Shown here piece after piece: positions 6,301 to 43,299 of a stretch of 64,000 nt of DNA. The position numbers were made by a program, and so were the translations under genes. Under the pieces are notes generated by a model. That model had not been told where the DNA came from, made no database searches, and saw nothing but the letters and a program-made list of their open reading frames with translations. Source of the DNA: Podarcis bocagei (Eukaryota); assembly GCA_964188305.1 (NCBI GenBank), contig OZ076894.1. One strand, 5' to 3'. Each line of letters starts with the position of its first letter. The first letter of the stretch is position 1.

Positions 6301-6896
6301 CCGGTTTATAGGACAAGTCAGGGATTACGGCATTGCATTGCAGGGGGCTGGACTGGATGCCCTTTGAGGGTCCCTTGCAGCTCTACACTTCTCTTATGTC
6401 TTACTTTTGCACTGTTTTTCTTAGCCCTGGTTGTAGTGTGGAATACAGCTGGAACAGGTTTCCACCCATTCCTCTCCTCTCTTCTCTCTGCAGGTCCGTT
6501 GCCCTGGGAGGCTATGGGCTGGCGCTGTGCCTGCCGGCCCCACAAGCGGAAGCAGCAGCCGTGAGCAGGATGGGCTCCCTTCTCCCCCCTCCCTTCTCCC
6601 GGCCCAGAGAGAGGCCCTCAGAGGCCGGGGACGGACCCTAGAGAGGGGGGAGGGGGGGAGAGCAGGCCATGGGGTTCCTGCCGGCTGGGGGGCAAAGGCC
6701 AGGCCTCCTCCAGCCATGAGGCACCGGCTGCCCCCTTGGGAGTCGCTGAGGCTGAGCCCCAGGCAGCAGCACCCACGGGAGAGATGCTTTGCGCCCCGGT
6801 GGAGGGGGCAGCCGAATCAACGCTTTCTGGGGAACGGCTTGCAGTCATGCGGGGCAGGAGGCTGTGACGCCCCCCTGGAGGGGCAAAGGGGCTGCC

Positions 6897-9800
6897 ATGG
6901 CCAGCCAGGAGGCAGCCCCGGAGGCCGGGCAAGAGAAGGCGGTCGCCGGGGTCCGCTCCGTGCTGCTCAAGCGCGACTCGCCGGGTGCTGAGGACCGCCT
7001 GCAGCGCCGCCGCCGCCACCGCGCCCAGCAGGTGCGCTTCAAGGACCTGGAAGAGGGCGAAGAGGAGCCCCCGGGCAGCCACCGCCCACGTGCCTCTGCT
7101 GCAAACTGCGCCAGGCGGAGCTGGCCCCAATCCGGGCCCCGCCTGCTGCTCGCCCTCCCGGATCCCCACGGGGCGACTGGCATCAGCACCGCCAGCCAGA
7201 CGTCACCCAGCCTGCAGCGGGCCCCCCGCAGCAAGAGCTCCTGCGACCTCGCCCAGGAAGGGGCGCCCTGTGCAGTGGGCCGCAGCCAGGATCCGCCCCT
7301 GGGGGGCACCGCCAGCCTTCCTGCCCTTGGTTGCTCCCTCGCCTTACCCCACGCCCAGCAGTGCCCCAGACTTCCTGCCACCCTGTGCCCCGGGCTGCCA
7401 GCTCCCCAGGGGTCATGCCCCCCGTACCCGGGGCGGGGGGCCCCGTGCCTCTCGGCCAGCTGCTCTTCCCAGCGCAAGCACTGTGCCCCCTCCTCCACGC
7501 AGCCCCATGGCACACCAAGCAGCTGCAGCAGCTCTGGCGCCCCCTGGCTGTGCCCACCCCCCTCTGAGCAGGCCTCAAGAGCCCCTCCCTGTGCCCCCCA
7601 GAGGGGCATCCCTGCCCCCTGCCCCCTTGCTCAGGGCCCCCCCACCGAAGACCCCACCTCTGCCTTCCTGCTTCCCACAGCAGGGCCCCCTAAGTCAGGA
7701 AAACCAGCAGCACCTGCGGCCTCCCCAGAGAGCCTCAGCACCACTCAGGCCCACCCCCCAGCCCCCACGCCTTCCCAGAAGCCTCCGGGCCCCCTTCTGC
7801 CCTCCTCCGGTCCCAGCTGCCCCCCTGAGACCTGCCTCTCCGCCGGACCCGGGGAGACGTTTCCCTGCGGGCAGGACCACCTTCTGCAGCTGGTGTCTGT
7901 GGCTGCCGCGCAGAGGGAGCCCCCGCCAGCATCTCAGGACCTCCCCAGGCGGGGGGGTGACATCCACTCCCAGCTGCAGTCCCTCGAGGGGGTGCTGGAG
8001 ACCAGCCAACGAACCATCAAGGTGCTACTCGACGTCATTCAGGATCTGGAGAAGAAGGAGGCGCAGCGAGATGGGTGAGGCGGGTCTGGGGGGGGGGTCT
8101 GGGTTGCCCAAGGAGCCCCCACTGGTCAGGCCTAGAGCCGCCGTGACCCTTTGGAGCCAGGGATGTTGAATAGATGCCAGGAGAGGCTATATTTATTAGA
8201 TATTCTTCTTCCTCACACTTGTGAGTTCTGCAGAGTGATATCCCTTTTGCTGCTTAGATGGGCTAGTTTTAGCCTTTCCGTTTAAGTAATCTAGGATGTT
8301 TTAAGGCAGATTGGATTCTCCTGATATTTCCCCCTTTTTAAACAATAATCACACAAACAGTCTTGTAAGAGATAAAAATAACATCTACTCAGAGTTTCTG
8401 AGGCAGAATAACAGCAGCTTAAAATGGTAATTCAGTTACAGAGACAAAATTTGTCGAGCCTCTAGGGACCCTGAGGGTCATCTAGTCCAACCCCCTGCAG
8501 TGGAGGAATATGCAGCTATCCCACATGGGAATCAAACCTGTGACCTTTGTTTTCAGCACCAGGCTCCAACCAAATGAGCCAATTTGAGAGGCAGACTTCA
8601 GTTTAGCTTAAAATGGTGTCTGAACATTAGAGCTCAGACTTCGCAGGTGTTCTCCCATTTCTGGCTTGGGGATGAAGAGACAAAAACGAGAGCATGTGCC
8701 CAGGCAGGCAAGAGAAGAGATCTATGGCTGTGCCCTCTGCCCGCCTGGGCACCGTGGGACTGTCTCTCACAGAGTTCTCTCCAGCAAACACACAGGGAAA
8801 TGCTGGGAGCTTCAGCTGTCCAGCAAAACATGACTTTTTGGTTTGACTGCGCTTTAAATGATGGAGCGTTTTTATGGTGGCAGCAGCGGGTTCTTCAGGC
8901 CACAAGCCAGCCTTGGCATCGCCTGGCACTGTACCTGCTCACTTTGGAAGCTGAAGCAGAGCCACTGTGGGGCCAGCCCCCTTGCCTTGGGGCGGCCTCT
9001 GCGCTGTGAGGCCTGAGGGAGTCCTTGCCTGGCTGCCTGCCTGGCACTTCCCTCCCTGAGACCTCCCGGGGGTCTCCTGGCCCCCCAAGCCAGCCCTGAT
9101 GCTTCCCCTCCCCCTGGTCCCTGCTGCTTGACCAGATGCCCTCTGGGCATTGCTGCTTGTGCCCCCCGGCACCAAAGGGGGCCCCTGCAACCAGGCAGGG
9201 AGGCGGCTTCTGGGCCTTCTGCTCATGGGCTCCTTCTGCTCCGTTTCAGGCGGCAGTCCTACCGGACAGGGCAGGACACCACCAACTGCGGGACGTGCCG
9301 GGACTGCGCCTGCATCATCTACAGGTAGGAGGGGCCTGGGTGTGGGGGTGGGGTTTGGGGGTGCCCCCTGGCTTCCCCCACCTCGTCTGCTCTCAGCTGC
9401 CGGCCACAGATCCACTGGCAGCCCAGACATCGGCTCCTGACCTCCACATTTCACATCAACATAAAATGTACGCCTCTTCAGTATGATTGAGGTGATGATC
9501 CTGCGTTTTCTGCTGAGGAGGGCAAAGGGGACTCTGGAGAGAGAGGAAGGCTGTATCGTTGGCCTGGGGTGAAGAGGACCCCCTCCCTAAAGGGCCAGCA
9601 TCTCCCCACCTCCATCAACCCACTTTTAGGCTAAGCCCACCCAGCTCCTTCGTCCTTTGGCTGCTTTCCAGTCTGGGGGTCCTGCTGGGTCTCAGGCAGC
9701 CACTCTTCTTCCTTGCCCAGCAGATTTTCCTCTCGCCTTCTCCCCCCCCCCCAGACCACCCACTTCTCCAGCAGAGCCCCTTCCCTGCTTTGGCCTCTGG

Positions 9801-12077
9801 CTGAAGAGCTGGAGGTGGCCAGGCGTCAGAGGGCCAGTTGCAGGAGGAGGAAGGGCTGCTCTTGAGCCCGGATCCTGCTTGTGGGTTTCCCACGGCATCT
9901 GGCTGGTCACTGGGAGAGCAGGAGGCTGGACTAAGGGAGCCCTGGGCCTGATCCTGGGGCTCCCTGGCACTGCAGGGGCAGTGGATTTTGATGGGGGCAC
10001 AATGGGGCAGAAGCAGACTCTGCAGGGCCTGTGGGGAGCTTGGACCATATCCCAGAAACGACTGCAAGGCTGGGGCAGCCCCACAGGGCCCCGACCCACG
10101 GAGCTGACAGCCGCAAAGGGCTACCAGCCCCATTGGCTGTCTTCTGCCTCTGAACACCAGATACAGGGGCAGACGATGAGGCTGCCCCCAAGTCCGGCTT
10201 AGAGACACTCTGGGCCCTTGCCTAGATGGCCACCTGTCTTGCATGCTCTAGCCGAGATTCCTGCATTGCAGGGGGTTGACCTAGATGACCCCTGAGGTCC
10301 ACTCCAACTCCCAATTCTATGATTCAGTGTTCTTGACACTGACATTTCATACATTCATAGAGTTGGGTGGCACAAGAAGAGTCTGGCTGCTGGACCACCT
10401 AGTCCATCATCGTGCTCTCGCAATGGCCAGCCGGATGCTGGTGGGCTGGGTTCAGCAGGGTGCCCTGGGGGCTGCCAGAGGTCTTGGGTGCTGGAGAAGT
10501 CCCAAGGGAGCTGGCAAGGGCTCCCATGCCTGCCTGCCCGCCTGCCCCAAACAAGTTCTTGAGGGAAGCGGAGGCAAGCGTTTCTGGCAGATGTGATATG
10601 AAGGATGCCTGCAAAGAATGACAGGCCGCCACAGCCTGTCTCCTCCTGCCGGAGATTCTCAGGAGGACAGAGTCCCTGCAGTGGCAGGCCCCCCCCCCCC
10701 CAGCATGGCACGAGAACGGAGGCTGCGTCTTTGGCCCTGCCCCTCCCTCACTTTAGTCCTGGGACTCTGAGTCAGCCAATGACTCCCACTGCCTTGAAGC
10801 TTGGGAGGGATGCCAGGATGCCCCCCCCCCCAGCCCTGGGCACCAATCTATCTATGGTGCCCCTTGCTTCAGTGGGTGTTAAGGAGGGTAGGTAACCATG
10901 TTGGTCTGACGCAGTCAAAATAAATTTAAAAAATTAAAGAATTGTCCAGTTGCACCTTAGAGACCAACTCAGTTTGTTCTGGGTCTAAGTCTTCTACTAC
11001 CTGAAGAAGTGTGCATGCACACAGAAGCTTCTATCCAGAATAAACCGAGTTGGTCTCTAAGGTGCTACTGGACCATTTGTTAAGGAGGGGTTAGAGGAGG
11101 GCTGTGAGCCAGGATGGTGAAAGGGCCTCCATGCCCAGGGAGAGGCGGGTGTCTCTGCCAGTTCCTTGCCGGGGGCAGAGGGGGGCTGAGCTCTGGCTTC
11201 CATAGAATCAGAGTCCTAGAGGGCTCTTGCTCCCAGCCCTGGCTGTTTGGCACAAGGAAGACATCTTCCACAGAAGTCTAGAATCCTAGACTTGCAGAGT
11301 TGGAAGGGACCCCTGAGGGTCTTCTAGACCAGCCCCCCGCAAGCATCCCTGGCAGACGGCCTCCCAATCTCTGCTTAAAAACCTCCAAGGAAGGAGAAAC
11401 CGGCAGCCTCTGCTCCTTGGAGCCTTTTCTCTGGGTCCCCCCCCCCCGTTTCCATTGACCTTCGGAGGCTGTTTCGGGGGTGGGGGGGGGTCTGGCTGGC
11501 TGGCTGTGCAGAGCCTCCCTGGCAGGACTGGGCCTTCTTCCTCTCCCTGCCTGCCTGCCTGCCCGCCGGCTCCTTCTGGCCTCCTGCCTGTGTGCTTCAC
11601 ACAAGGCCTCAGTGCTAATTGGGATTGACGGGTCTGTCTCTGCCGCTGCGGCGACGGGTGAGACATGCCAGGGTCGGCGGAGGCAGGCGGGCTCCCATTG
11701 GCAGCCTCCCCAGGCTCCTGCCAGCTGACCTGCCTCCTCTGCACCAGCTCCCACGGCCCCCCAGGAGGGATGGGGGCAGCCCAGCCAGACCCCCATCTCT
11801 GCCCCCAATCACTAGCGTTGGCTGAGTGGGGTTCCTTGGGAGACGCCTCCCTCTGACTTGCTCCCCGCCTCCCCACAGCGTGGAACATGATTTCCGGAAG
11901 CAGGAGGGGCGTTTGCAGCAGGTGCTGAGCACCATTGAGCCTGAGATGAGCCACAGCCCCCCGGGGGCCACGCGAGCTGCCACGCCGAGCCACCAGGAGC
12001 CGTCGCCAGCGCTGAATCTGCCCGTGGTGAAAGCGGAGCCCAAGAAGTCCCGGCGAAAGTGTTTCTGGTTCCTGTGA
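6897..12077 (+). CDS. INSYN2/FAM196-family protein (inhibitory synaptic factor 2-like), 3 coding exons, ~483 aa
   Basis: Exons 6897-8074, 9250-9324 and 11879-12077, all GT-AG with phases 2/2. Kozak GCCATGG. N-terminal VRSVLLKRDS...QQVRFKD and C-terminal LQSLEGVLETSQRTIKVLLDVIQDLEKKEAQRDG|RQSYRTGQDTTNCGTCRDCACIIYS|VEHDFRKQEGRL...CFWFL match the FAM196 conserved blocks. AATAAA at 12326-12331. Confidence 0.85.
10889..11077 (-). mobile_element. Older Penelope-like copy with inverted 5' part and degenerate hammerhead, 12-bp TSD
   Basis: TSD TGTTAAGGAGGG at 10877-10888 and 11078-11089. Imperfect inverted arms. CTGAAGAAGTGTGCATGCACAC from 11001, with a mutated GAAA box. Confidence 0.75.
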
Positions 12078-14271
12078 TGGTGCCGTGCCCAGAAGGGTCC
12101 GGGGGTCTCCCTCCCCAAGGAGAGGAAAAGGAGCCATGGGGTGAGGGGGCTGCCTCCCCCCATCAGTCCACACCAGTCAACCTGCCACAGAGCCGCAGCG
12201 TGGAGGGATTGCACCAGCCTTTTTATTGTTCAAATCTGTCCAGTTTAACTTGCAGAGCCCCCCACCCCCGATGAAAGGATGGGAGGAGAGAAGGGAAGAC
12301 ACACACACTGTATTGAGGAGGTCGCAATAAACTCCTGTGAGGCGCCTGTTTTCAAACTGCTTCTCCTTCAGAGTCTTTCTTCGGGGGGGGGGGAGGCTGC
12401 TTTATCCCAGAATCAGGACAAGCCCCTCCCCACCCCTGGCAGCAATGTAACTTCCTAGTCTGTGGCTTAGGAAGGGGGGTGCAGGGGGTGCGGTCCGCCC
12501 CGGGTGTCATCACTGAGGGGGGTGACAAAAAATAACTCCCGCACCCACCACACGCCCTTTCCTACGCCACTGCAGAAGCCCAGATAGCTGGGTGAGGTGG
12601 GGGGCACTGGGCGCCACGCCGGGGGGCCTGCAGCCTGCCTGAGCCACGCGTCTCTCCTGAGGGCGAGGCGGCGGGCGGACTGCCTGCAAGCTCCACGCTG
12701 CTTTTTCAAGGGCTTGCGTCTGCCCACCGCCTCAGCCAGCCTACAGCTGAGAGGATGCTGTGGAGACGGTTCGCGCAGCGCGCCCTGTCTTAGCTCGCCC
12801 TTCCCCGCGGGCGGCCTGCTCTGCCCCCGGCTGCAGGGCGTGCGCACCACCCCAGGCACCCGAGTGGCTAGCTATGCTGCTGTTCCAAGTCCCCTGGCAG
12901 AGGAGGGGGGCACTGCAGGACCCGGATTGGGGCACCAGTAAAGTTCAACCAATGATCTTTATTATAAGATACTGACTATTGGGGAAGTGACCCCCACATT
13001 TGGGTTTATTGTTTCAAGCTCTGAAATATTTTGGCCACAACTGATGCAAAGTGTGTAAAATCAAAGACCTACATGGGAATTTAACCAGCAGTTTTTAAAA
13101 TTGTAGCTGGAGTGGGGAGATTCCTCCCCTTCTGTCTCATCTGCTAGAAAAAAATGGGGTGTCGTCACCCAGTGAAGTTGATAGGCCAGAGGATCAAGTC
13201 CTTCTGTGGGCCAGAGGCAAGTGCCTGGGTGAGGAGAGACTTTCTGGTGGCCCCGAGGAACTAAAGGGGAGGGGGCAACCCCTTGCCCTCATCTGCCATG
13301 GCCAGACTTGATCGGGGAGGGTCCCTTTCTGCACCCGCAAGGCCCTCAGGGTGAGCACGAACCTCCAACTTCTTCCTTGCCCAACAGAGTGAGGCTGCTG
13401 GAGCTCTTGGCATGGCCTGGGCATGGCATGGCCCACGTGGGCTCCTGACCTCTGGCTTGGCATCCCCCATGGGCATCTCAAGGGCCTGAGCCTTTCCCAG
13501 GCAGTGGCTGCAGCAGCAGCAGCAAAGGGAGCTTGCGTCCTGCCTGCCCCTTTGCCCCCCATGGAGGGATCCAGTGAGGAAGAGACTGAGCTGCTTGGCA
13601 GGGAAGCTGTCAGCCCCCACGGTCCCAGAGGGGGGGCTATGGAAGGTGCTGGGGGCGCCCAGTAATCAGAGCACAGGAAGAGCCGGCTGGATGAGGCCAG
13701 TGGCCAGCCAATGGGAAGAAGTCCACAAGCAGGACCAAAGCCCAAACTCTGATTCCTTGTGATTCCCAGCAACTGGTATTGAGAGACCTCTGCCTCTGAT
13801 TCTGGAAGCAGGATATGGCCACTGTAGCTAGTGACCATTCCTAGCCTTCTTTTCCACAACCTCGTTTAAAGCCATTCAAGTGGGCTTTTCCCTCTTGTGG
13901 CAGTGAGTTCCACAGGTCTATCGAGGGGCTGTGTGAAGTCCATTCTCCTGCCTGTTCCAAATCTCTGGCTATGATTTCAGCTTCCAAGGATGCATGTCCA
14001 GATAAGCAGCTCTAGTTGCAAGACCAAGGAAGGGAGGAGCTGCCAGTCAGAGTGGGCTATGCTGGGCTCACCGAGGCAAGTGGAACCTTCCTTCGGTTTT
14101 GCCTTGTGCAACAAGGTCAGGATTAGGGAGGCGCCAGGAGAAGGCCAAATGCTGGTCTGCAGCACTCTCTGCTGGTGGCGAGGAGAAGTGCGGGCTCTCT
14201 ATGGAGTGTCAAAAGTTAAAGGATAAATATAGAACATCATGGAAGGGGAAGGGGAAGTCAGTGAATAAATT

Positions 14272-15249: not shown

Positions 15250-18007
15250 TCACAGGCTGCTTGATGGAGAGGCAGCCAGACGCTTCCCAATGCAAATGCT
15301 GGAGAGAGGAGAGGAAGAGGGCAGTGAGTGAGGGGCTTGGTCAGGAGAGGCCAGGCCAGCAGCCCCCTCTCTTGCTACGCTCCTCCAGGCAAGTGGGAGA
15401 GGCAAGGGAAGGCTCTGAGCAGCAGAAGAACATGAGAAGAGGCTGCTGGATCAGGCCAGAGGAGACCCATCTAATCCAGCATCCGCTTCTGCAGCAGCCA
15501 GCCAGGTGCTCAGAGACGTCACCGCAGGTCTCTAGACGTTTTGGAGGGGAGGGGTAGGAGACAGGCACTATAGGGGGCTGGCTGCACTGGGCAGAATTAA
15601 GGGTGTTTCCGTAAAGGGAGAGAAAAATCAACCCTGTGAGAGAGGCGCTAACTGTGCCTGGTTCGTTGCCCCCCCCCACTCACCCAAGGCCAAAGGCCAA
15701 GACGTGGCTGAGCAGCAGAGAGGGGATGACCAGAAGCAGCAGCTGGGGGTCCCGCAACCCCCTCCTCCTGTGTAGAACCGGGCTGAGCAGGGGGGCACAC
15801 GCAGGGGGCAGGCAGGCCAGCTCCCTGCAGAGAGACAGACAGACAGAGTCCAAAGTGGGGCGAGAGTCTTGGGGGGGCTGCCTGAAGCCAGGACCCCCGG
15901 GGAAAGCCAGTGAAGAGCCATCCTTACTTTTGGTGCTCAGGGGGGCTGGGCCACGACCAGGGCAGGGTCCCCAGCTGGACAGACCCTTCAGCGTCTTCCC
16001 TCTGCAAAGAGAAAGTGCAGCATCCCATAATTTTTTTTAAGGATGAAGGGGGGCATATCACCTGGGCAACCATCTGGGCATGTCTTGTGGGTGGGTGTGA
16101 ACACACCTGTCTATGGAACTTGCGGTGCTTCATGGGTCAGTCACCACAATGACCCCTGAGATGAAACCTTTCAAGACCCCAGTTTGGTTGGCGCCTTCTC
16201 AGTCTGAGGCTACAAGCCCACAAGCCCATGGCCCAGGTGGCTCCTTTGCACACCTCAGCGTTGACACTCACCTGCCCTGGGCTCTGGTCCTCCACACCAG
16301 GCGCCTTCAGTGCAAGGAAGGAGCTGGAAACACAAGAAATGGAATCTGCTGGTGAGAAATTGCTCTCGCTGTCTGTGTGTTCATGCACAAGAGAGATTTC
16401 GCTGCCATGCTGTTTGTGAGCATGCTCAGAAGCTGCTGTGAAGCCCTTTAGAGGCTGATGCCCTCACTGGACCTAAATCTCTACCAGGCAAGACTTGTCC
16501 ACAGCCCGTGAGGATGCTCAGGTGAGTCCTTCAGAAGGCAGGAGCCTCCTGGGCAGGTGAAGAGGCTGGCCAATGGAGCCCTGCCTCAGACAGGAGAAGG
16601 GAGCCGAGTTATCCCCCACAGAAGCAGTCCAGGTCATCCTTGCAGGGGCTTTTGTGTGTCCTGACTGTGGCAGTCCCTGGAAGACGTCTGGCGGCCACTC
16701 CCAGGCCGGTCTTTCTGGGGGAGCAGCTATAGAAACCAGAGCCCACACAGCAAAGGCTCCTTGTGACTAAAAGCCAGGAAGAACTTTCTGAGCTGTCTGG
16801 CAGTGGAACAGACTCTCTAGGGCGGCGGTGGAGTCTCCTTCCTTGGAGATTTTAATGCAGAGGTTGGATGGCGTCTGTCATGTTGTTGAGTTCCTGCATT
16901 TCAGGGGGTTTGACTAGATGGGCCTTGGAGGTCCCTTCTAACTCTACAACTCTGTGATTCCATGATTCTTCCAGCTCTGGCACATTTATAGTGTCAGGAT
17001 GTGGGGTTCACATCCTCAGGTTCGTGTGGCAAGGTGGAGCCCAAAGAAAATCAGCCAGACGCTCCAATTTCTCAGTGAGAAGTTCAGAAATACAAATCTC
17101 AAAGAGGAGAGGCGATTTGGTTCAAACTTTGACGTTTCAGAGCATCCCAAAAGGGAAGGGAACAGAACCGCGAGTACTGAGTACTGTGCGATAATTACCT
17201 AGCATTAAAAGGAGCTGACCGGAATTTGCTTAGGAGCGCAGTTATGCCAACTCCAGTAAAAGCCTAAGGAGCCCCACATGCAGCCCCATAGCCTGGGGGG
17301 GGGGAAGTCGAGTCAGGCTCACGGGAGGACTTGGAAGGAAGAGCTGGCCTCCCCCTGGGTACGCAGTGGGCCGCCCCCTGGGTACGCAGCCCTGAGCAGG
17401 GGTTAAGGAAGGGGCGAAGAGCCAGGGATGCCCAGTAGCGCCTTCTGACTCTGAGGGACTGATCTGCCGTCCCCTCACCCGAGACCCGGCAGTCCAAGCT
17501 TGGTCTCCCGCCGCCCCCCGGTGTCGTCGCTTCCCGGCCCTTCGGAGCTAGCAGCCGCCGCCCGCTTGTCCACCACAGAGCCTCCCTTTCGCCTGCTGCG
17601 CTCACAGCCAGTTGCAAGGAGTTCCGCCGACCCCGCTGCCCACGAAAGAGTCACCTGCCCACGACCACCTACCCCTCGGCCCGCGGCGGCTCCACCTCCA
17701 GCTGCGCTTCCAGCAGGATCCGTTCCATGTCGCGGTGGGGCGCACAGGCCGGCGTAGGGGGCTCCTCCAGGTCAAGTGGGGGCACCTCCACCCAGGAGCC
17801 TAGGAAGCGGGCAGGCAGGCAGGAAGTCGCAGTTAGAGGGACCGAACTGGATCCCCCCACCGCCTGGGGGACGCTGCTGCAGCTGCTGGGGGGGGGGAGT
17901 CCCAGAACCCCTACCCCAATCTGGCCCCTCAAGGGACCCGGCGCGGGAGCGCGCTTCTCCTCCCTCCCCCACTCACTCTGCAGGGCGTCTTCCCGGGGCG
18001 CCTCCAT
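15250..18007 (-). CDS. BNIP3/BNIP3L(NIX)-family mitophagy receptor paralogue, 6 coding exons, 157 aa
   Basis: Exons 17977-18007, 17673-17799, 16272-16323, 15928-16001, 15684-15824 and 15250-15298. All GT-AG, 474 nt, frame continuous. Protein: MEAPREDALQSSWVEV (LIR)...DMERILLEAQLE...WSWPSPPEHQK...VIPSLLLSHVLAFGLGICIGKRL (TM with SH-xx-A-x-G-x-G dimer motif). Candidate AATAAA on - strand at 14774-14779. Confidence 0.9.
16770..16965 (+). repeat. CR1 LINE 3' fragment in BNIP3-like intron 2
   Basis: aggaagaactttctga...cagtggaacagact...ggagtctccttccttggag...CR1 tail. Confidence 0.7.
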
Positions 18008-18080
18008 CGCTCCGCTGCCTGGGCTCCCTCCCGGTGCCAGGCAGGTGCCCGTCCCATTAGCCAGCCGGCCAGCTGGAGGC

Positions 18081-18090
18081 CACGTGACGC
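18081..18090 (-). promoter_or_regulatory. E-box/HRE/CLEAR-like element upstream of the BNIP3-like ATG
   Basis: GCGTCACGTG(GC) on the - strand about 75 bp upstream of the ATG, within a CpG island. A second TACGTG lies at 19029-19034. Confidence 0.5.
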
Positions 18091-18479
18091 CCAGCCGGCT
18101 CCCTTCTGTAAACAGAAGCGCCGGGCACCCTCGCGCCTTAAAAGGGCGACGCCAGCCTGCTCCGGGGAGGGGTGGGGACCCCAGCCGGCAAGGGACAGGG
18201 GAAGGGGCGCCGCTCCGTATGCCAATATCGGACGGGCTGCTGCTGCCCCAGGAAGACGGAGCCGGCTCATTTCCAGCTGCTCCGGAAGGGAGAACCCGTC
18301 CCGAACCATTGGATCCAAAGGCTAAGGAACGAAATTCTGTCTTTCGACAGGAAGAGCAGCGGAGTCTCTCCCTCGTAGGAGGGATGCTTTGGCAGGGGTT
18401 GGACTAGATGACCCCTGGGTGCTTCCATCTCTGCAATTCTAGGGCTCTGGGGGGAAGGCTTCCTGAACATCACACCGTC

Positions 18480-24774: not shown

Positions 24775-27700
24775 ATGGCGGCGGCGGCGGCGGTGTCTCG
24801 GGTGGCGCGGCGCGGGGCGGCTGCGGGGCTGCGGAGCGGGGTCGGGGGCGCCTGGGCGGCGGCGGGGCCGGGCGGCGGCGGCGGGCAGAGGCGGCCTCCT
24901 CCTCCTCCTGGGGGGTGGCGCTGGGGGGCGGCGGGGGCGGTGCTGGGGGGCTGGTGGCTGCTGCGGGGCCGGGGCGAGGGCGAGGGCGGCGGGGCGCGGC
25001 GGGCCTCCCTCTGGCCGGGCCTCCCTCGGCTGCTGGCCGCCGTGCCCTCGCCGCCGCCCTCGCCCTCGCCCTCGCCGCCCCCGCCGGGCTCCCCGCGCGC
25101 CACCTACAACTTCATCGCCGACGTGGTGGAGCGGACGGCGCCGGCGCTGGTCTACATCGAGATCCTGGGCAGGTACGGGGCGCCCGGGCAGCCGGCGGGA
25201 GGGGGGGGTCGCCTTTCCCCCGGCAGAGACTCTAGCCCAGGCCGATGACGGCTCCAATGGGCACCGCTCCAGGCATCGGGGCGAGGAAGCAAGAGTTGAG
25301 AAGCGGGGGAAAGGGGTAGAATTAAAGGGGATGATGATGATGATTTCTTATGTATACCCCGCCCATCTGGCTGAGTTTCCCCAGCCACTCTGGGCGGCTC
25401 CCAATCGAGTGTTAAAAACAATACAGCATTAAATACTAAAAGCTTCCCTAAACAGGGCTGCCTTTAGATGTCTTTTAAAGATAGGATAGCTGCTTATTTC
25501 CTTCACATCTGAAGGGAGGTCATTCCACAGGGAGGGCGCCACCACAGAGAAGGCCCTCTGTCTACTCACAATGAGGGAACCGCCAGAAGGCCCTCGGAGC
25601 TGGACCTCAGCGTCCAGGCAGAACAATGGGGGTGGAGACACTCCTTCAGGTCTACTGGACCACGGCCGTTTAGGGCTTTCAAGGTCAGCACCAACACTTT
25701 GAACGTGCTGAGAGCCAATGCAGATCTCTCAGGACCAGCGTGATGTGGCCACTGCCAGATGCAAGAAGGAGGAGAGGAGGAAGATCCCAACTGTAGAAAC
25801 ACCACCTCACCAGCTTTTCCATTCAAAGCAGTGCATTTCCAAAAGTAGAGGGACAGCCAGCAGGCAGCCAGTCCGGCTTCTCTAGGGAAGGAGTTCCAAG
25901 GGGTCTGGCAGCAGCCACCACCCAGAAGGCCCTGTCCTGTTTACATTTTCCCATGGGGGCACCTGGCCACTGTGAGAACCGATCCTGGCCCTGCTGGAGT
26001 CCTTGACCTGTGCCTGGCTGTGTGTCCCCCTTGCCTGGTCCCCATGTCCCTCATTCCCTCCGGCTTCCCACAGGCACCCATTTTCCGGCCGGGAGGTGCC
26101 CATCTCCAACGGCTCTGGCTTCGTGGTGTCTGCGGATGGGCTGATAGTCACCAACGCCCATGTGGTGGCCAACCGGAAGCGGGTGCGGGTGCGCCTGGCC
26201 AGCGGGGAGCTCTATGACGCCGTAGTGAGGCAGGTGGACCAGGTGGCCGACATCGCCACCATCAAGATCAATGCCAAGGTGAGTGCACTGGGGCAGCGGG
26301 TGATTTGCAGCAGTGCCCCTTGGCTCTGTGAGCTGGGCAGGGAGGGGCAGCGGTGGCATCATCCTAGACCCTGTTGGAAAGTTGAGATTGGTGGGCCAGA
26401 AGCCAAGAGCAGCTCCTGGTTGGGTGGGGGCATGCCGGGCAACCAGCCTCAAGCGGCCATCTAAGCTGCCCAACACCAACTCCTCCCCCCTCCCAAGCTG
26501 GGCTGACGCCAGTCTCCTGATGATTTCCTGACCCCCAGAAGTGGGGCCAGGCTTCTGCCCCTCACCTGTGAATGAGGAGTCCAGATGAGGCCGGAAGGAG
26601 AGCTCAGCTTGGGGGGGGGGGCTCTCCCATGCTGTGTCCTGGTACTGACACCTGTCTCTTTCCTCCTCCTCCCCCCCCCAGCGCCCACTGCCCACGCTGC
26701 CCCTGGGCCGCTCCTCTGATGTACGCCAGGGGGAGTTTGTGGTGGCCATGGGCAGCCCCTTTGCCCTGCAGAACACCATCACCTCAGGCATCGTCAGCTC
26801 TGCCCAGCGAGGGGGCCGGGAGCTGGGCTTGGCAGCTTCGGACATGGAGTACATCCAGACGGACGCAGCCATTGACGTAAGGCCTGCTGGGCATGAGAGC
26901 CGGGAGGGGGGCAACGTGTGTGTGGGGGGGGGGGGCTTTTTGTTGGCCTGTCCCCTGAGTGGCGCAGGTGCTGCCTCTGCCATGCGGGAGGGGCCTGGGT
27001 GGTTCCTGGGCCTCCCTCCTGGCCCTTGTGGTGAGGGGGGGGGCACCCAAAGGGACCAGGGCAGCTCTGGGTCACTCCAAGTGACTTCCTCTCCGGTTTT
27101 CTGCTCTGCAGTTTGGAAACTCCGGGGGACCCCTCCTCAACTTGGTAAGACCCCCGTCCCCTGCATATTTCCTGGGAATGGGGGCTTCTGCTTGCACAGG
27201 GTGGGGGTCTTTGCTCGTTGACTGGTCGGAGCCACAGGGGGCTTGGCTCCTAAGAGCCTGCTGCTGCTGGATCAGGCCGGGGGGGGGGGGTTGGTCCCAC
27301 ATCCTGTTCTCACAGTGGCTGACCAGACGCCACCAAGGGATACCTGCAAGCAGGATCGGGGCCCAGGAGCAACTCTGATCTCCTGCAGTTTCCAGCAACT
27401 GGCATTCAGAAGCAGGGCTGTCTCGGGGGGGGGGGGGCAGAGCCCGGCCAGCCTCCTCCTCCACGCAGTCTCATTCTCCTTTGAAGCCATTTAGGCTGGC
27501 GGCCACCCCGTCTCCTGTGGGAGGGAGTTCCAGTGTTTAACTATGCATTGCGTAAAAAGGGACTTCCTTCTATCAGTCCCGAATCGCCCAGGGTTCATCT
27601 TTGCTGGATGGCTAGGAGTGTTAGGAGGGTGGGAGCAAAGCTTTTCTCCCCACCCCCCCGAAAGCCAACCTGAAGTGGCTGCCCTGGGGCTCCTCTCCCT

Positions 27701-31240: not shown

Positions 31241-34200
31241 CTACAAAATCTGGTTATTGAGCTGTCCTGGGTACTGTTCAAAGCGCCTGTTTGCCTCCTC
31301 ACTGAGAGCATCACCTGCAGCAGAAGGACCAGAGGAGGGCATGAGGAAGAGGAGGGGACCCCCAGCAAGCCCCCCCCAAAAAAAACCCTTGGAAAGTACC
31401 TATATGGCAGCTGTGCACCCAGATGCGATGGCCGTCATACTTGCAGTTGCACTTCATGGCGTTGTTGGTGAAGTCGCTCTCCGCCACTTCGTACCGGGGG
31501 TTAATCACCACCTGGAGGAAGGGAGGGAGGCTGAAGGGAGCCCTGCGCCCCACGGGCTGATGGGAAGAAATGGCACCCATCCTGGGGGGCAGGGAGTGCT
31601 CTGAGAGCTGGACGTCAAAGCCCTGAGGAAGGGCTGGAGCGGGGAGCAAGGCAGAAGCTCCACAGGTGCGGCGCCCACTGCCATGCCTGCCCCACTGATT
31701 TCAACAGGGCCTGATTTGGTGCCCAGCTTTGGACGGCTTTTTGCTCGCTGCCAGGTCAGTGTCTATAGAGTTGCAGCCACAGGGCTGGATCAGGCCCTAT
31801 TTACAACAAACTAGGCAGGAAGTGGGATAGAGAGGGAATCGCTTCCTGCCTCTCATAAGACCAGGCTTGGCAGGGACTCACTTAATAGAAATGGAGAGTT
31901 GGAAGGCCCCCCTGTGTGTGTCTCCTCTGGGAGGGAATTCTGTGACGCAATCCCTTGCCCTCCCTGTCCACCATGCTCTCAAGCAATCATGTGCCTGGGT
32001 GCTCCAGACAAACACACCCTGTTCTGAGACTACCAACCTTAAAAGTGTTGCTATGCTTCTACTTTCCTGTATTTGCTGCCTGCATTGAAATGTAAGTAAA
32101 CAATTTTTGTATGTTTGTCTTACTAAAACGTGTGGTACCTTTTCTGCAGCAGGTAGAGAGGAAGGTCAGTGAACCTCAAATAAAGGTATAAAAAGGTATA
32201 ACTGCCTCATTCCTAAAATTCAGGAAGCTGCAAAATGACTTAAGTGTGTTTACTTTGCCAAAAAGGCTTCACAGCCCACCTCAATTCATCTGCCGAAGGG
32301 ACTCTCAGGGCCATATAGTCCAACTCCTGCAGTGCAGGAACCGCAGCTATAGCATCCCTGACAGTTGCCATTCACACAACCTGCAGTTCACCTGCGGAGT
32401 TTGCTGCCCCTCCCCTCCCTCTTCTGGTCTCACCTGCAGGATGTAGTTGCCAGCCTTGACGTCGGTGATGTCTATCCACTGGCAGTCAATGTCGTGGCGA
32501 TAGAGGTCCCAGCAGCCCACCGTGATGCCCTGCTCCCCAAAGTTGGCACATTCATAGCGCTTGCTCACGTCTGTCCAAAGAAGGGGAGGGGGGGTCAAGT
32601 CCTGCCAGGGGGCAGCAAACTCCTCCCTGAACCCCTGGGAAGCTGCTGCCAGTCAGTGTAGGCAACCCTGAGCTCATTGGACTCCTTTAGATCCCATTCC
32701 TATCTGGGCTTCTGAGCCTCAAAGGCAGCCACTGCCCCCTGCTCCCCCCCCCCATGGCCACAGGCACCCTGGCAGCTTCACCCACCCTCGTGGCATTCAG
32801 TGTCCTCCAGGCAGAAGCTGGCCTTGTGTCCCTCTGCGACTTTGGTGCCATTGGAAGTCAGGAGGTCATAGTGGGTGAAGACGTCCATGCTGTGGTAGTG
32901 CCTGGGGTGAGACATGGCGGTGTTGTGCAGTGGTTAGAGCATTGGACAAGGAGAGACCAGGGTCCATGAAGCTCCCTGGGCAACTAGCCTACCTTGCAGG
33001 GTGTTGGGAGTATTTAAATGAAGAGGGCAGAGAGAGAAGCATGCCTTCGCCACCTTTAGTTCCTTGGGGGGAAAGGTGGGATATAAACACAACAGAATAA
33101 AAAGAGCGAGAGACCCAGCCCTGAGCCCAGAGGAGGGTGAGTGCTCACCCGTGACATTCGTGCCAGACCCAGGAGTGGCGCCCTGCCTTGGGGCGAAAGT
33201 CGGCCCGGCCGTTGTTGTGGATCTGCGAGGAGAAGCGCAGGAGGCGGCGGTGGCCGTAGGGCCAGTTGGCATTGCGGGCGCTGCTGGACAGGCAGTTCTC
33301 CTCCGCAGCGCAGTAGAGCATGTGCAGAGGGCGGTCCTCAATGTACGCCGTCTCTTGTACCAGGGGGGCATGCAGCAGCAAGTCCGAGGCAGCTGTGAAG
33401 AGAGAAGGGGAGGGGGCCGGGCCCAGCAGCTGTGGGGCTAGCCCAAGGCATAGGGCCACCTGAAGAGCCCGCCTCTGCTGTGGGGCTGGCCCCTCTGCCT
33501 CTCAGTGACCCCAGTGAAGGTGGGAGGGCATGTCTCTCAAAGGAGCCCCTTCCTCCCCTGACCCCCAACTGGCTTCCAGGTGGGCTTGCTCCCAGGAGCA
33601 GGCCCAGGGGTCTCCTTCTGCCCCCCAGCAGTCCCTCCCCTGCCTCACTTTCTGAGCAGATGACTCCAGCGGCGAATCGGGTGCCCGTCTTGGGGCAGTT
33701 GAGGGTGCTGTGGTGCTGGCAGTGGCTGAGCGCCATCTCGTGCCCGCCACACTTCACTCCGCTCAGCACCATCTCCGTCACGTTGCTGGCATCCCAGTAC
33801 CACGTTTCCTGGGGACAGAGCACAAGAGGCAGGGCAGTGGGGCACCTTCGCCCCTCTCTGTGGCCAGCACAAGCAGAGGCACCAAACAGAAGGGTCTCAG
33901 AAGGGCCCTCCAAGGGCCATCTAGTCCGGCCCCCTGAAATGCAGGAATCGCAACTAAAGCCTCTGGGACAGGGGGCCACCCAGCCTCTGCTACCAACCTC
34001 CTGAGGGAGTCTGTTGTGCTGGTTCCCAAATCCTGTTCCTGCAGTGTCCAACCAGAGGCCAGAGCACCAGATCCAATGGACTCTCCTGCCTTGTTGGAGC
34101 AGAGCAGGTGGCCATCTGCCAGGGCTGCTTCAGCTGCCATACCTGCATTGCAGAGGGTCAGACTAGATGGCCTCTGGCATCCTCCCAACTCCACAGTTCT

Positions 34201-37200
34201 CTTGGCTAGTAGTAGCCCCCCCCTTCTTCTCCACTGGGCCTCTTCTCCTTCACCCAGCTGCCCTCCCAGGAAACCCCTCCCCCTGACTGCCTCCTTCCCA
34301 GCCCCACGGCTGCCCCACACCTACCGTCACGGCATGCATGGCGTAGCCCAGGCCGAGTTGGCGACAGGCCACCATGGCCTCGGTGGTGCTCCAGCCGGTG
34401 CTGCAGACGGTGCCCCAGCGGCCGGCGTGCTTCACCTCCACGCGCCCCTCAAACGCCGTTCGCCCCCCGGCGATGCGGATCTGTGGGGAAGCCCAGCGAT
34501 GAGCTGGCGGCTGTCCCTCCCCATCCTGGCTGGCTACCCCTTCCCACCAGCCAAGGCCAGGAAGGCAGTGGCCGCCCTCAGCCCCAGCCGAGTGGGGGGC
34601 ACGTCATCGTGGCCTCAAGGGTTCCCCAGCCCTGGCGCAAACCAAGCCCCTCCCCCACAGGGGCACTGGGGGTTGCCAGCCCCAATCTGCATAGGGGGAG
34701 TTGTGGGCTGGGAAAAGCCTGCAGGCAGCCTAGTGAAGTTCCCCGTCCTTTGGGAGGAGCTGCTGCTGCTGCTGCTACTACTTGGGGGTGGAGAGAGGAC
34801 AAGGCCCCTCTTCCCTGGGGCCCCCAGTGCTGACCGTGGTTTCGTGGCCCATGTAGGGGACGTTGCAGCGGGCGGCCGCGTCCTCTGTGTGCTTGCAGTC
34901 CTCCTGCGTGATGTTCTTGTGGGGGCAGCTCCAGAGGGACTTCTCAGTGCCCAGGCAGCGCACCTCGTTCAGGTGGATCTGGCCCATTCCTGTGGCAGGA
35001 GAGGAAACGCTGGGCCTCTGGGAATGGCCAGCTGAGAGCCCCTTTTGGGGGGCAGTCTATGGGGAAGGTGGTGGTGGGAGTCAGAGACGGCCTGTGCCCC
35101 CTTTCGTCATCCCAAGCCACCACCCACATTTCCTTTGCCAGGCTAGTCTTTTCTGTAGAAGTATACTTGTTTCCAAAGTGAGCACATCTCTGCCGGTGGG
35201 GGCGCATGCAGAGTGGGGGGACCCCCCATGAACATGGGGTGCCAGGCCTTTCTGGCACCTGTGGCAGTCCAGACGGCTGTGGGGTGTGTGTGGAGGGACT
35301 GTTGGACTGTGGGGCACCCCTGAAGGAGCAGCCCAGGCCCCCCCCCAGCGGCTCACCTTGGCCCATGCGTGCCCCCGTCAGAGCCTCCTTGGCGCTCCCA
35401 AAGCCAAGCTCCCGGCACACAACACTGGCGGATGCCAGGCTCCACCGGTCATCGCAGACGGTGCCCCACTCGCCGTTCTTCAGCACCTCGACCCGCCCCT
35501 CGCCGGGCTTGGCCCCTCCCTTCAGCCGTACGCGCTGCTGTGGGGAGCAAAGGGCAGTTGAGACGCCCAGGAGGTGGTGCCCTGAGGCTGCCCCACTCCA
35601 CAGTCCTCAGAGGTAGTGCAGTGCAGTGGTTTGAGAGCTGGGACCTGGGAGAGACTCCACCACCCTGGAGCTCAGGGGCCGATCTTTGGGCAGCTGCCAT
35701 CTCTCAGCCTGACCTGCCTCCCAGGCTTGTTGCAGGACAAAATGGGAAGAGGTGCCAACTTGCGCTCCATTTGGAGGAAAGGAGGGATGTTGAGGTCATA
35801 ATAAACAGCTGTGTCCTGCGTTCCAGGGGGTTGGACTAGACGACCCTTGGGGGTCCCTTCCAATTCCACAATTCTAGGATTCTGTGAAATCGCTGGCAGG
35901 CTGGGCAAGTGCCCCCTGCTCCCTCCTTCCTCGCTCACCTGCCCCGCCTGCTGCCGCTGCCTCTTCTTCTTCTGGGCGTTCCCGGTGGCAAACAGCGGCC
36001 CAGGGACGCAGCTGACCACGGCCGGCATCCCCGCCCTGCAGACGCCCGTGGCGTTGCCCTTGTAGAACTCGAAGGAGCAGAGGGAGAGGTGCACCTCCGT
36101 CCCCAGGCAGGCCACCGAGTGCAGGCGGTAGTTGAGCGGCTGCCGCTCCAGGGAGAGCCTGCAGGGAATAGGAGGGGGTCAGAGGGCAGGGCTGGAAGGA
36201 GCACACAGGTGGGGCACCTGTGGGGCAGCCGTGCATCATAGCATCTGCCCCCCCCACTGTCCCCTGCACTCCCATACCAAGCAGGGCCCTCGGCTTCTCT
36301 GGACCTGGAATGACGGCTGCAGAGGAGCCTCTGGCAGCCGGGTGCCAGTCCTGCCCTCAGACTCCCAGGGACTCACAAGGCCCCATTACCTCTTGGTGCC
36401 CCTAAAGTCCTCCCTGCGTCTATGTTTGGGGCGAGACCTGGAGACCGGCCTGGAAGACAGACAGACAAGGTGAGGGACGGAGCCCACCATGCACCCCTCC
36501 CTCCCTGGGGCCGGATCCTTGCAAACTCTCTGCTCATTTGCACTGCTCCGGGATGGATCAGGCCGCACAGGCCAGCCCAGGCTTGTCAGAAGCAAGCCTG
36601 GCATCCACTCCCCCAGGACTCATGCCAGCAGCCCCAGCCCCACGCAGAGAAGCCATGCAGCCCCACACCGGCAGTCAAGCATTGCAGGGAGGAGGTCTCT
36701 TCCAGCTCTGCAGTTCTGTGGCTCAATGTCTCATTTCTGCCTTGGGACTCTGAAGAACAGGAGAATGCCCCCTCCCGCCCTCGCTGGGCATCCAAAGCCT
36801 CCCTCTAGCCCACCCCACTGTGCCCCACAGCACCACGCAAAGTGCTGTGAGAAACCTCAAAGCTGATTGCAGTCCCCATTTTCTCCCCAGCAGCTGGCAC
36901 ATGTAGGATGGTAGAGTGCTTCTGTAAAAGGAGGCTCCATTTAGCCAGGAGGGATCCTAGCTCAGCAGCAGAGGACATGGTGCTATGAATGCAGAAGAGC
37001 CCAGGATACCCCCCCCCCAAAAAAAATCTCTCGCACACACTCAAAATAAGAAAATTCCTTCCAGTAGCACCTTAAAGACCAACTAAGTTAGTTCTTGGTA
37101 TATACCAAGAACTAACTTAGTTGGTCTTTAAGGTGCTACTGGAAGGAATTTTCTTATTTTGACTATGGCAGACCAACACGGCTACCTATCTGTAACTGGA

Positions 37201-40200
37201 ACACACTCAAAAGGCTGGGAAAGATCTTTTTCCCACCTGGTGGGACCTTTGGGGAGTCATAACAGAGAGCTCAGGACCGGATGGGCCAGGGAATGAGGCA
37301 GGGCAAACCCACTTCCTCTGGCCTTCAGGAATTTGCCTAATTCCCTTCTAAAGAGGCCCCCGTCTGACTTGTGGCAGCGGATTCCAGGTTCTGCAATGAA
37401 GAACTGCCTTTTTGCCCACTGGAACTCTCCCAACATTGGATCACTTCCTGAGTCCTGGAATTATGAAAGAGAGAGGAGCCCCCCCCCCAAAAAAGAAGCA
37501 TTTTCTGAGTGCTTTTATAAACCTTCCTCCTATACCTCCTTTTGCCCTCAGGCTGAGCTGAAGAGCCTCCCAGAATTTGCCCTTTTAGGGAAGACTCAGA
37601 GAGGAAACTGATGATGCCACACAGTGGACCCAGGTTACACGGTGCCTGTGTTGCGGTGGGACCTGGGTGCTCAGCTCCCTTGCAGCCCACCTTTGCTTGC
37701 CTGCCGGCAAAGACGCCTCTTTCTTCCCAGCTGAAGGCACACAGAGGTGCCCTCAGCCCAGCAGTGAGTCACCGCTCAGACATCCCTGGACCAGACAGAG
37801 CACACACTGGCGCCTTTGTCCAAAGTCCTCCGCGGCCAGACGCCCATTCACATGGCTCAGGTGCTGCCCCACTCTCCTCTCCCCCCGCCCTGCCCGCTCC
37901 TTTCCTCGGAAACATTCCGGCGTCTTCCCGTGCCATTGACACACCAGCTCCCCAGGCCAAGTCAGGGTGATGGAGACGGGCAAGGATCCATCGCAAGGCC
38001 AGAGGGCTTCTCTCCTGTCTGTCTGTCAAATGACCCTCAGGTCCCTTCCAACTCTATAATGCTATGATTCCAACTCTGCATAGCGGGGGGGGGGGGCTCC
38101 AAAGGGTCCTATCAAGACAAATGCCGCCCCCCCAACTCTCCATGTTCCTCAGTGCCAGCCCCCGTCCGCACAGCAGAAATGGCTCAGCTCCAGGGCAGCC
38201 CAAGGCCACGAGACACTCATGCCCCTGGCAAGACAAGAAACGTCATCCGCCCCTGGGGAACGCCCCAGAGAGAGGTGCTGCCCCACTGAGAGGCAGAGGA
38301 GGCAGAAAGCAGAGAGCTCAGCCCTCCAGCAGCGCCTCTGAGTCCCTGGTGAACCTCCTGCCCTCAAACCTGGAGGGGAAGCATTGCGGCGGAAAGGGGT
38401 GCTCGGTTTGGGGAGGAGGTTCACCACCTCCCCTTCTGGATCCACAGCCAGTGAATCCGGACTGAGCAGGACAGCATGGCCCCCTGTCAGGTGGGGGGTG
38501 GGGCAGGACTCAGGGGCGGGGGGCCAGGGTCCGCCTGCTGCACAGAAGCAGGGGCCTCCTGGCTCCGTTACCTCTTCCGGGGGCCTGGCTTCCTCCGGCC
38601 CTTGGCAGCTCGCTTGGCCCGCCTGCGGGAGGAAAGTCAACAGGGCCTCTTCAGGAAGACAGGCGAGGGGCCAGGCGGGGGGGGGAGCCCCCAGGGCAAC
38701 ATCTGGCCAAGTTGGTCCCCAATCTTCCCGTTCTCTAGCTGCAAGAGCTGGAGGTGCTTCCACTGAGCAGCTTCCCACCTCCCACCCAGACACCCTCCCC
38801 AAATCTAACCATCTGAATTCAAAGCAGCTTAGCTGGCAAGACAGGAAGGTCCAAGGCAAGACAGCAACTCCTCCAAAGACCCTGGCTCCTTGCAAGGCAA
38901 GATAGACATTGCTAGGCGGGAGCTGTAGGATAGCTCAGCTCCAGGGTGGTGATGTCATTTACAGCAGTCCAAACCTATACATTTTGGTGCCCAGAACTGG
39001 ACATGGGACTCCAGGTGGAGGCTGACCAAGACAGACTAGAGCAGACTCTGACTTCCCTTGATCAGGACACTAGACTTCTGTTGATGCAGCCTAGAATTGC
39101 ATTAGCCTTTTTTGCTGCTGCATCACACTGTGGACTCATGTCAAGCTTGTGATCGAAGAAGACCCTGTGATCCTTTTCACATGACCTGCCGTCAAGTCAG
39201 GTGTCCCCCATTCTATATACAAAGCTGGTTATCCCTGCCTAAGTGTAGAAACTGAAATTTGTCCCTATTAAAATCCATTTTGCCAGTTTTAGCCCAGTTT
39301 CCCAATCTGTTAAAGGTCATCTTGAATCCAGATTCTGACCCCTGTGTCATTTGTGACACCTCCCAGTTTGGTGTAATCCTTGACAGGAATTTGCACTCAG
39401 GGGGGCAGAGCCTTAAAGGGGTCTTGACACATGGCTATGATGATGACGACAGTATCCAAGACTTAAGTGCAGAGAGCCCAGAGGTCCTCTCCTGATTTCC
39501 CAACAGATGACCGCAGTGCCTGGAGACAGACAGTGAGGTCATGCTGCTATAGCAGTGACCAGAGGAGGAATGACCACTGGTAGGAGCGCAGAGAGAAGAA
39601 ATGCCATGGTGCGACTGACCACCTTTCTCTGCCCCAGCTGCAACAAAACATGTCTCTCCCCTATCGGTCTCTCCAGTCACAGCTGGAACTCTTCAACAGC
39701 CTGGCTTCACCCCCAAAGACACCCTCCTCCATTGTCTCCAGAGACAGACAATGTTAACCAGCAATTTCCCAGCATGTGATCAGTCCATTCCCCCTCCCCC
39801 ATGGAGGTCAGTGGCAAGACTGTCCTCCAAGGGTCTGAATGGGGGGGCATCTCGGTTCTCCCCCCTCCACGCAGTCACTCACTTGTAGAAATTGCGGTTG
39901 ACCTTCTTCTCAGCAGGGAAGCCCAGCATCCCACAGATGACGCGGCTGTTGCGGCTGCTCCAGTTCTCATCACAGATCTGTGCCCAGCTGCCCCGGTGGC
40001 GGACTTCCACAATGCCCTCTGCCACGGGCAGGGGCCGCTTGGCGTGGGAGACCACGGGGCGCAGGCGCAGCTCCTCCACCTGGTTCTGCTCTGTCTGGAG
40101 GGAGGGAGGGAGGGTCAGCCCCCGGCAGAGACCTCTGCCCCACTGCATGGCCTGGCAGGGGACTGGGTTCCATCCCGAGAAAGGATGCTTGAGTTGTGAT

Positions 40201-42929: not shown

Positions 42930-43299
42930 CGTCCTGGCTGCCTGGACCTGGAGGGGAAGAGAGGGAGCTTGAGCGGGGAGAACCCCCGGGCCCAGGCAGG
43001 CAGGCAGTCGCGGCCCTGCAAGGTCAGCCTCGCGGTCGTCCTGCCCCAGCGAGGCCATTCCTCCACCCGGGAGCGCAGAGCCAGTCCCCGCGGCCATCCT
43101 GTGCCCTTGCCCAGGACCAGAAGCGCCCCGCCCGCTTCTCCGGCTGAACTGGCGCGGATGCTGCTCCCAAGGGCTCGGAACAAGTCCCCCCTCCGCCTAA
43201 GAAGCCTCTCGTCCGCAGGAGCCCCTTCCGCTGGCCAGGTGGGCGCCACTTGGGGATCGAGTCACCCTGCGGAACTGTCGAGGGGCTTTTAACTTTCGC

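Follow-up and report, generated by a model that had tools for sequence, protein, structure and literature searches.

The window analysed here is a stretch of 64,000 nucleotides (nt) from the lizard Podarcis bocagei (contig OZ076894.1), and the gene under study is a BNIP3/NIX-type gene on its minus strand, between positions 15250 and 18007. BNIP3 (human 10q26) and BNIP3L/NIX (human 8p21) are hypoxia-induced mitophagy receptors. When its six exons are joined, a coding sequence (CDS) of 474 nt with one terminal stop is obtained, encoding a protein of 157 amino acids (aa). All five introns run from GT to AG with pyrimidine-rich acceptors, and no single open reading frame (ORF) spans the 157-aa protein within this interval. 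The start codon, an ATG at 18007, has a G at both -3 and +4. Exon 1 is 100% identical to exon 1 of Podarcis raffonei, with the same N-terminus in the database proteins P0125 and P0126, and a word search with exon 2 retrieved a P. raffonei protein with 98% identity. Beyond Podarcis, word searches with exon 2 or with the 110-aa X2 protein gave hardly any matches, and the wider set came from a profile search and an exhaustive search. As the exon lengths of P. raffonei equal those of the window (31, 127, 52, 74, 141 and 49 nt), the Anolis gene also consists of six exons (67, 133, 46, 80, 126 and 49 nt) and proteins of 157 aa are predicted by NCBI, the model is not a chance product. The last exon measures 49 nt in the cuckoo as well as in P. 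raffonei and Anolis.

The spliced model was joined inside scripts from the window and used for the frame check, the trees and the dN/dS estimates. Searches were done with the window exons singly, and full-length searches with database proteins such as P0125 (98% identity to the window model). The gene is already predicted by NCBI as 'BNIP3-like isoform X1' in P. raffonei (XP_053259194.1, LOC128421019) and P. muralis (XP_028600487.1, LOC114604515), in both cases with 157 aa; the window model differs from P0125 and from P0126 by three residues each. Longer NCBI models of the same gene are found in Lacerta agilis and Zootoca vivipara. The X2 isoforms (P0001, P0002), named 'uncharacterized protein', are without exon 5 and hence without the membrane helix, the skip of 141 nt being in frame. 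Such an exon-5-skipped isoform is predicted in two Podarcis species, Lacerta and Zootoca, always under the same name. For Pogona, a shorter NCBI isoform X3, also 'uncharacterized', is listed. Together these are the proteins P0001, P0002, P0004, P0123 and P0171. Alternative isoforms are normally issued by the NCBI pipeline only given transcript support, and the X1/X2 pair is an indirect hint of expression. The features of the window are listed in Table 1.

Table 1. Exons of the BNIP3-type gene, candidate control elements and other features of the window
Feature	Position	Strand	Description
Exon 1	17977..18007	-	31 nt; encodes MEAPREDALQ and the first base of the following codon
Exon 2	17673..17799	-	127 nt; LC3-interacting region (LIR) SSWVEV and minimal essential region DMERILLEAQLE
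Exon 3	16272..16323	-	52 nt; short linker in place of the Ser-rich region of BNIP3/NIX (alignment A3)
Exon 4	15928..16001	-	74 nt; PWSWPSPPEH, degenerate equivalent of W-x-W-SSRPEN; 100% identical in P. raffonei
Exon 5	15684..15824	-	141 nt, 47 codons; basic juxtamembrane stretch and bulk of membrane helix IPSLLLSHVLAFGLG
Exon 6	15250..15298	-	49 nt; helix end and short tail ICIGKRLAASPSSSL, then TGA
Candidate promoter element GTCACGTG	18080..18095	-	E-box; core resembling a coordinated lysosomal expression and regulation (CLEAR) element or a hypoxia response element (HRE); 79 nt 5' of the ATG
Candidate polyadenylation signal AATAAA	14774..14779	-	470 nt 3' of the stop
FAM196	6756-8075	+	Pfam, E 7e-17
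FAM196/INSYN2-type gene	6756-12100	+	tail-to-tail with the BNIP3-type gene; P. raffonei product 488 aa
HtrA protease exon (HTRA2-like)	25976-26461	+	Pfam
LOXL gene	32350-43196	-	lysyl-oxidase and SRCR exons; Pfam
Sole N run of the window	41821-41960		140 bases, inside the LOXL gene
DOK-type IRS/PTB exon	49145-49852	+	Pfam; DOK region listed as 49145-50879
Open frame of 1556 codons	55798-60465	-	between repeats 55799-56914 and 61592-62266, which share translated text

The gene belongs to the BNIP3 family. P0125 matches the Pfam BNIP3 family (PF06553) with 45.8 bits at a cut-off of 26. The LIR occupies residues 11-16, with S12, W13 and E15 invariant in alignment A3, and it is followed by the minimal essential region, which in NIX reads MEKILLDAQHE. 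Binding of NIX to WIPI2 requires E72, L75, D77 and E81 together with the LIR (PMC12339401); at these four positions the window protein has E, L, E and E, with WVEV as LIR. In the membrane helix SLLLSHVLAFGLGICIG, the Ser-His pair and the A/GxxxGxxxG dimer positions are retained. Hydropathy peaks at residues 123-141, in the hydrophobic helix IPSLLLSHVLAFGLGICIG and 16 residues before the C-terminus, and the short tail reads KRLAASPSSSL. The C-terminal 38 residues of an orthologue match the PDB structures of the BNIP3 transmembrane dimer (2J5D, 2KA1/2KA2) with an E of 1.4e-6.

For the phylogenetic placement, the sequence sets were taken from an exhaustive search, with 47 matches, and a profile word search, and trees of 81 and then 66 rows were made. 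In the careful maximum-likelihood (ML) tree, BNIP3 (support 100/98), BNIP3L (100/98) and BNIP3+BNIP3L (100/100) are each recovered, and the sauropsid genes lie outside all three. Forcing the sauropsid genes into BNIP3 or into BNIP3L gives a tree that is 24.0 log-likelihood units (lnL) worse and is rejected by the approximately unbiased (AU) test (p-AU 0.0014). In both constrained trees the joining branch has zero length, and the two are otherwise equivalent. The gene in the window is neither BNIP3 nor BNIP3L. Holding squamates and birds together gave the best tree found, 3.27 lnL above the free search, and two constraint runs on the third lineage gave identical trees. In this best tree, the third-lineage rows form one clade in species-tree order, nested as squamates and birds, then caecilians and Ambystoma, then Latimeria, then the ray-finned fishes (with one unnamed protein) and finally the cartilaginous fishes. 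Among the 47 matches of the exhaustive search, the majority of them without a species name, none was recognised as a mammalian member of the lineage. All frog sequences in the trees belong to the BNIP3L clade, and within the sampled amphibians, which are not an exhaustive set, only caecilians and Ambystoma showed the third lineage; a loss in frogs is possible.

According to Wu et al. (2017; Front Physiol, PMC5526904), a 'BNIP3L2' lineage of this family occurs only in ray-finned fishes and the coelacanth, with zebrafish NP_991133.2, coelacanth XP_006005304.2 and gar XP_015215528.1 among its members. Chicken, zebra finch, alligator, turtle and Xenopus were included in that study, and no squamate appears in its BNIP3-family lists. 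The Latimeria row of our tree (P0028) matches the Lcm_BNIP3L2 stretch in the published alignment, and the medaka N-terminus shown there matches the teleost group of the third lineage. Among the papers searched, that of Wu et al. was the only phylogenetic study, and none reported the lineage in tetrapods. We consider it likely that the gene in the window is a functional, protein-coding lizard member of this third vertebrate lineage of the BNIP3 family, BNIP3L2, separate from BNIP3 and from BNIP3L/NIX. Squamates and birds appear to have kept the lineage next to AUP1; the phylogeny adds caecilians, a salamander, the coelacanth and ray-finned fishes, and probably also cartilaginous fishes. As a modest new point, and contrary to Wu et al., BNIP3L2 would thus persist in sauropsids and some amphibians.

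Conservation was assessed mainly against P. raffonei, whose locus is collinear with the window at 88-93% nucleotide identity. The exons are 97.5% identical without a single indel, compared to 84% and many indels for the introns. Among the 12 coding differences, nine are synonymous and three nonsynonymous, which corresponds to a ratio of nonsynonymous to synonymous substitution rates (dN/dS) of 0.11-0.13 (binomial p 0.0006 against neutrality). Between Podarcis-like sequences and Anolis, dN/dS is 0.2-0.4. For BNIP3 and NIX, a value of 0.081 has been reported (Wu et al. 2017, PMC5526904). The gene is clearly under purifying selection, with a constraint looser than that on BNIP3/NIX. Intact orthologues are present in lacertids (Podarcis, Lacerta, Zootoca), agamids (Pogona, Phrynocephalus), Anolis, Sceloporus and Hemicordylus. 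An earlier note, made from the letters of the window alone, had described six small exons that splice into an intact 157-aa protein not visible as a single ORF, carrying an LIR, the DMERILLEAQ block and a transmembrane dimer motif, and had taken it for a third BNIP3/NIX paralogue. The exon model is confirmed by the frame, the GT-AG introns and the NCBI orthologues, the motifs are all present, and the third paralogue is borne out by the constrained trees; the dN/dS check that it named came out as purifying.

Several observations weigh against this assignment and have to be set beside the alternatives. In the free ML search the only invertebrate outgroup, itself a long branch, came to lie between squamates and birds, a typical long-branch artefact, and the branches of the sauropsid genes are long, with a biased composition. 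Copies of BNIP3 and BNIP3L within squamates are evidenced only from snakes. Taken singly, two window exons score 15.0 and 13.7 bits, under the Pfam cut-off of 26 (exon 2 is a weak BNIP3 match with E 0.02, exon 5 one with E 0.05). The sauropsid proteins have lost or degraded the Ser-rich SSHCDSP, most of W-x-W-SSRPEN-PPKEF and the juxtamembrane KKGGIFSAEF, and with these central blocks degraded the function may be changed or weakened. Expression, finally, is read from the NCBI X1/X2 isoforms on the inference that these reflect RNA data. Long branches could expel a fast copy from its own clade, and one might then see here a squamate BNIP3 or BNIP3L that evolved fast and moved beside AUP1, instead of an extra paralogue. 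The Anolis and current Pogona proteins are indeed called 'BNIP3' by NCBI, and no Anolis BNIP3 or NIX is listed in PMC5526904. We regard this explanation as highly improbable, given the AU test (p 0.0014) against union with either clade and the zero-length joining branch. Birds possess a true BNIP3 alongside the AUP1-adjacent orthologue of the window gene. In squamates, the BNIP3-clade protein P0151, from assembly GCA_000516915.1, which we take to be that of the king cobra, a snake, adjoins a WD40 gene, as would fit the expected neighbour PPP2R2D, and the vipers Vipera and Crotalus have BNIP3L in the tree. The KRLAAS tail is common to the third lineage of fish, coelacanth and caecilian and is found in neither BNIP3 nor NIX. 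The BNIP3 neighbours PPP2R2D-JAKMIP3-DPYSL4 (PMC6142374) are not those of the window gene, which are FAM196, AUP1-like, HTRA2-like, LOXL and DOK genes.

It is equally hard to maintain that the gene is a decaying or non-functional remnant whose frame looks intact although expression or the receptor role has been lost. At least eight squamate genera, and birds as well, have an intact frame with conserved exon phases, dN/dS is clearly less than 1, and exons without indels alternate with introns that have many. What such decay would explain is the long sauropsid branch, the missing Ser-rich region and SSRPEN-PPKEF block, the low Pfam scores and a dN/dS above the 0.081 of BNIP3/NIX (PMC5526904); the retained parts are those known to matter, namely the LIR, the minimal essential region and the helix motifs. 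Somewhat less remote, yet still improbable, is orthology to zebrafish bnip4, which the earlier note had suggested. Of the four named family genes in zebrafish, bnip4 has the odd name. The published quantitative PCR primers for bnip4 (PMC8268848) translate to SWVELH and TSSHCS, and both peptides occur in only one of 184 proteins, P0140, whose identification as bnip4 comes from these two six-residue primer translations. P0140 falls in the BNIP3 clade together with fish BNIP3 (100/97). Forcing it to the third lineage is 7.3 lnL worse, a placement that is not formally rejected (p-AU 0.067). Moreover, bnip3b is an alias of bnip4 (PMC4201762), and two zebrafish chromosomes carry the BNIP3 synteny block (PMC6142374). 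For zebrafish, NP_991133.2 is given as the third-lineage member in PMC5526904, and the third-lineage protein of Scleropages bears a zebrafish-style name, zgc:73226, for which a phrase search of the literature found no paper. The suggested orthology to bnip4 is unlikely to hold; in fish, the lizard gene most likely corresponds to BNIP3L2 (zebrafish NP_991133.2).

The surroundings of the gene were compared in P. raffonei, a cuckoo (Phaenicophaeus), paddlefish, Callorhinchus and Scleropages; P0028 (Latimeria), P0023 (Rhinatrema), P0161 and P0145 had no contig record. In P. raffonei the order is an HTRA2-like gene (Trypsin and PDZ domains), an AUP1-like gene (CUE domain, 431 aa), the BNIP3-type gene and FAM196, collinear with the window. 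In the cuckoo, the orthologue P0135 lies between an AUP1-like gene and a DOCK gene in tail-to-tail orientation. The third-lineage gene is likewise tail-to-tail with DOCK in paddlefish, where an Iso_dh gene lies upstream, and in Callorhinchus. In Scleropages, an Iso_dh gene is found on one side and a gene for a 192-aa PA-domain protein (PRADC1-like) on the other. AUP1 was not seen beside the fish third-lineage genes, and the Anolis locus has no called neighbour within 10 kb. The DOCK genes of cuckoo, paddlefish and Callorhinchus are full-length, with 1834-1856 aa (L004 12962-21971; L005 45411-46485; L006 29536-33730). The window was searched for DOCK exons with no convincing result. In mammals, two INSYN2 genes sit inside DOCK1 and DOCK2, and the FAM196 gene of the window may be a remnant of a fourth DOCK/INSYN2 unit.

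The order AUP1, HTRA2, LOXL3, DOK1 is the one expected of a block like human 2p13, and the human AUP1 locus is not known to hold a BNIP3-type gene. Human 10q26 carries BNIP3, INSYN2A and DOCK1, and 8p21 carries BNIP3L, LOXL2, DOK2 and DOCK5. Since BNIP3-type, INSYN2-type, LOXL-type and DOK-type genes together fit a paralogon, the gene can be viewed as an ohnologue. The gene sits in a 2p13-like block with FAM196, AUP1, HTRA2, LOXL and DOK genes. The earlier note had counted region 2p13 to the same paralogon, and the retained ohnologue proposed there is supported by an old, vertebrate-wide lineage as well as by these neighbours. Upstream of the ATG, the candidate promoter element GTCACGTG agrees with P. 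raffonei in both motif and distance; in Anolis and the cuckoo, the 600 nt ahead of the start codon yielded no copy of it. An Rfam search of the window gave no match. The long open frame at the far end of the window looks like an LTR (long terminal repeat) retroelement with a long pol-type ORF.

Judged from its sequence, the third BNIP3/NIX-type protein is probably a mitochondrial mitophagy receptor. A tail anchor would hold the 157-aa product in a membrane, presumably the mitochondrial outer membrane; about 120 disordered N-terminal residues would project into the cytosol, and the single C-terminal helix would be succeeded by a tail of roughly 10-16 residues. Dimerisation would take place via the Ser-His and A/GxxxG face of the helix. 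The LIR WVEV is predicted to bind ATG8 proteins and, together with the DMERILLEAQLE stretch, could recruit WIPI proteins, so that autophagosome formation would start on mitochondria and the product would serve as an additional mitophagy receptor. As the middle of the protein has strongly diverged in sauropsids, its regulation likely differs from that of BNIP3/NIX, and the X2 form, which lacks the helix, may be soluble. It is a tentative and on the whole doubtful idea that sauropsid BNIP3L2 is a differently regulated mitophagy receptor that, for example, escapes the usual control of BNIP3/NIX turnover, with the exon-5-skipped form as a soluble competitor. On this idea, birds and reptiles would run a three-receptor system, which mammals and apparently frogs have cut to two.

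BNIP3 and NIX are treated as a complete pair because mammals have those two. A third gene that persists under selection in lizards, birds and probably caecilians and salamanders would point to a later loss on the mammalian line. As a natural minimal variant, with only LIR, minimal essential region and helix, the protein could also help to test which receptor parts are needed. Third-lineage genes are inconsistently named in the database, i.e. 'BNIP3' in Anolis, Pogona, stickleback, sturgeon and Callorhinchus, 'BNIP3-like' in lacertids, sharks and caecilians, and 'zgc:73226' in Scleropages. Orthology transfer by database names ('BNIP3', 'BNIP3-like', 'uncharacterized') can therefore mislead studies of chicken, lizards and fish.

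Compared to BNIP3 and BNIP3L/NIX, the window gene has in common the Pfam domain, a serine-preceded N-terminal LIR, the minimal essential region, a C-terminal helix with the dimer motif and an organisation in six small exons. It differs in that some 40-60 residues of the middle are missing, HRRRGLRDPQ stands in place of KKGGIFSAEF, the gene falls in a separate clade, and its neighbours are AUP1, HTRA2 and FAM196 instead of PPP2R2, DPYSL and JAKMIP genes. The NCBI Podarcis models, made with Gnomon, agree with the window gene in six exons, 157 aa and 98% identity; their names are automatic, and none of the annotations recognises a separate third lineage. Zebrafish bnip4 is likewise an oddly named BNIP3-family member of a non-mammalian vertebrate, but its primer-matched protein groups with fish BNIP3. 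With the BNIP3L2 lineage the window gene is united in the best tree, next to the coelacanth and ray-finned members and outside BNIP3+NIX; the KRLAAS tail and a minimal essential region of LLEAQ type are common to both. At 157-185 aa, the sauropsid proteins are the shorter ones, without the central SSRPEN-PPKEF and Ser-rich blocks that are kept in fish. The published range of BNIP3L2, fishes and the coelacanth, is here extended to squamates, birds, caecilians and a salamander.

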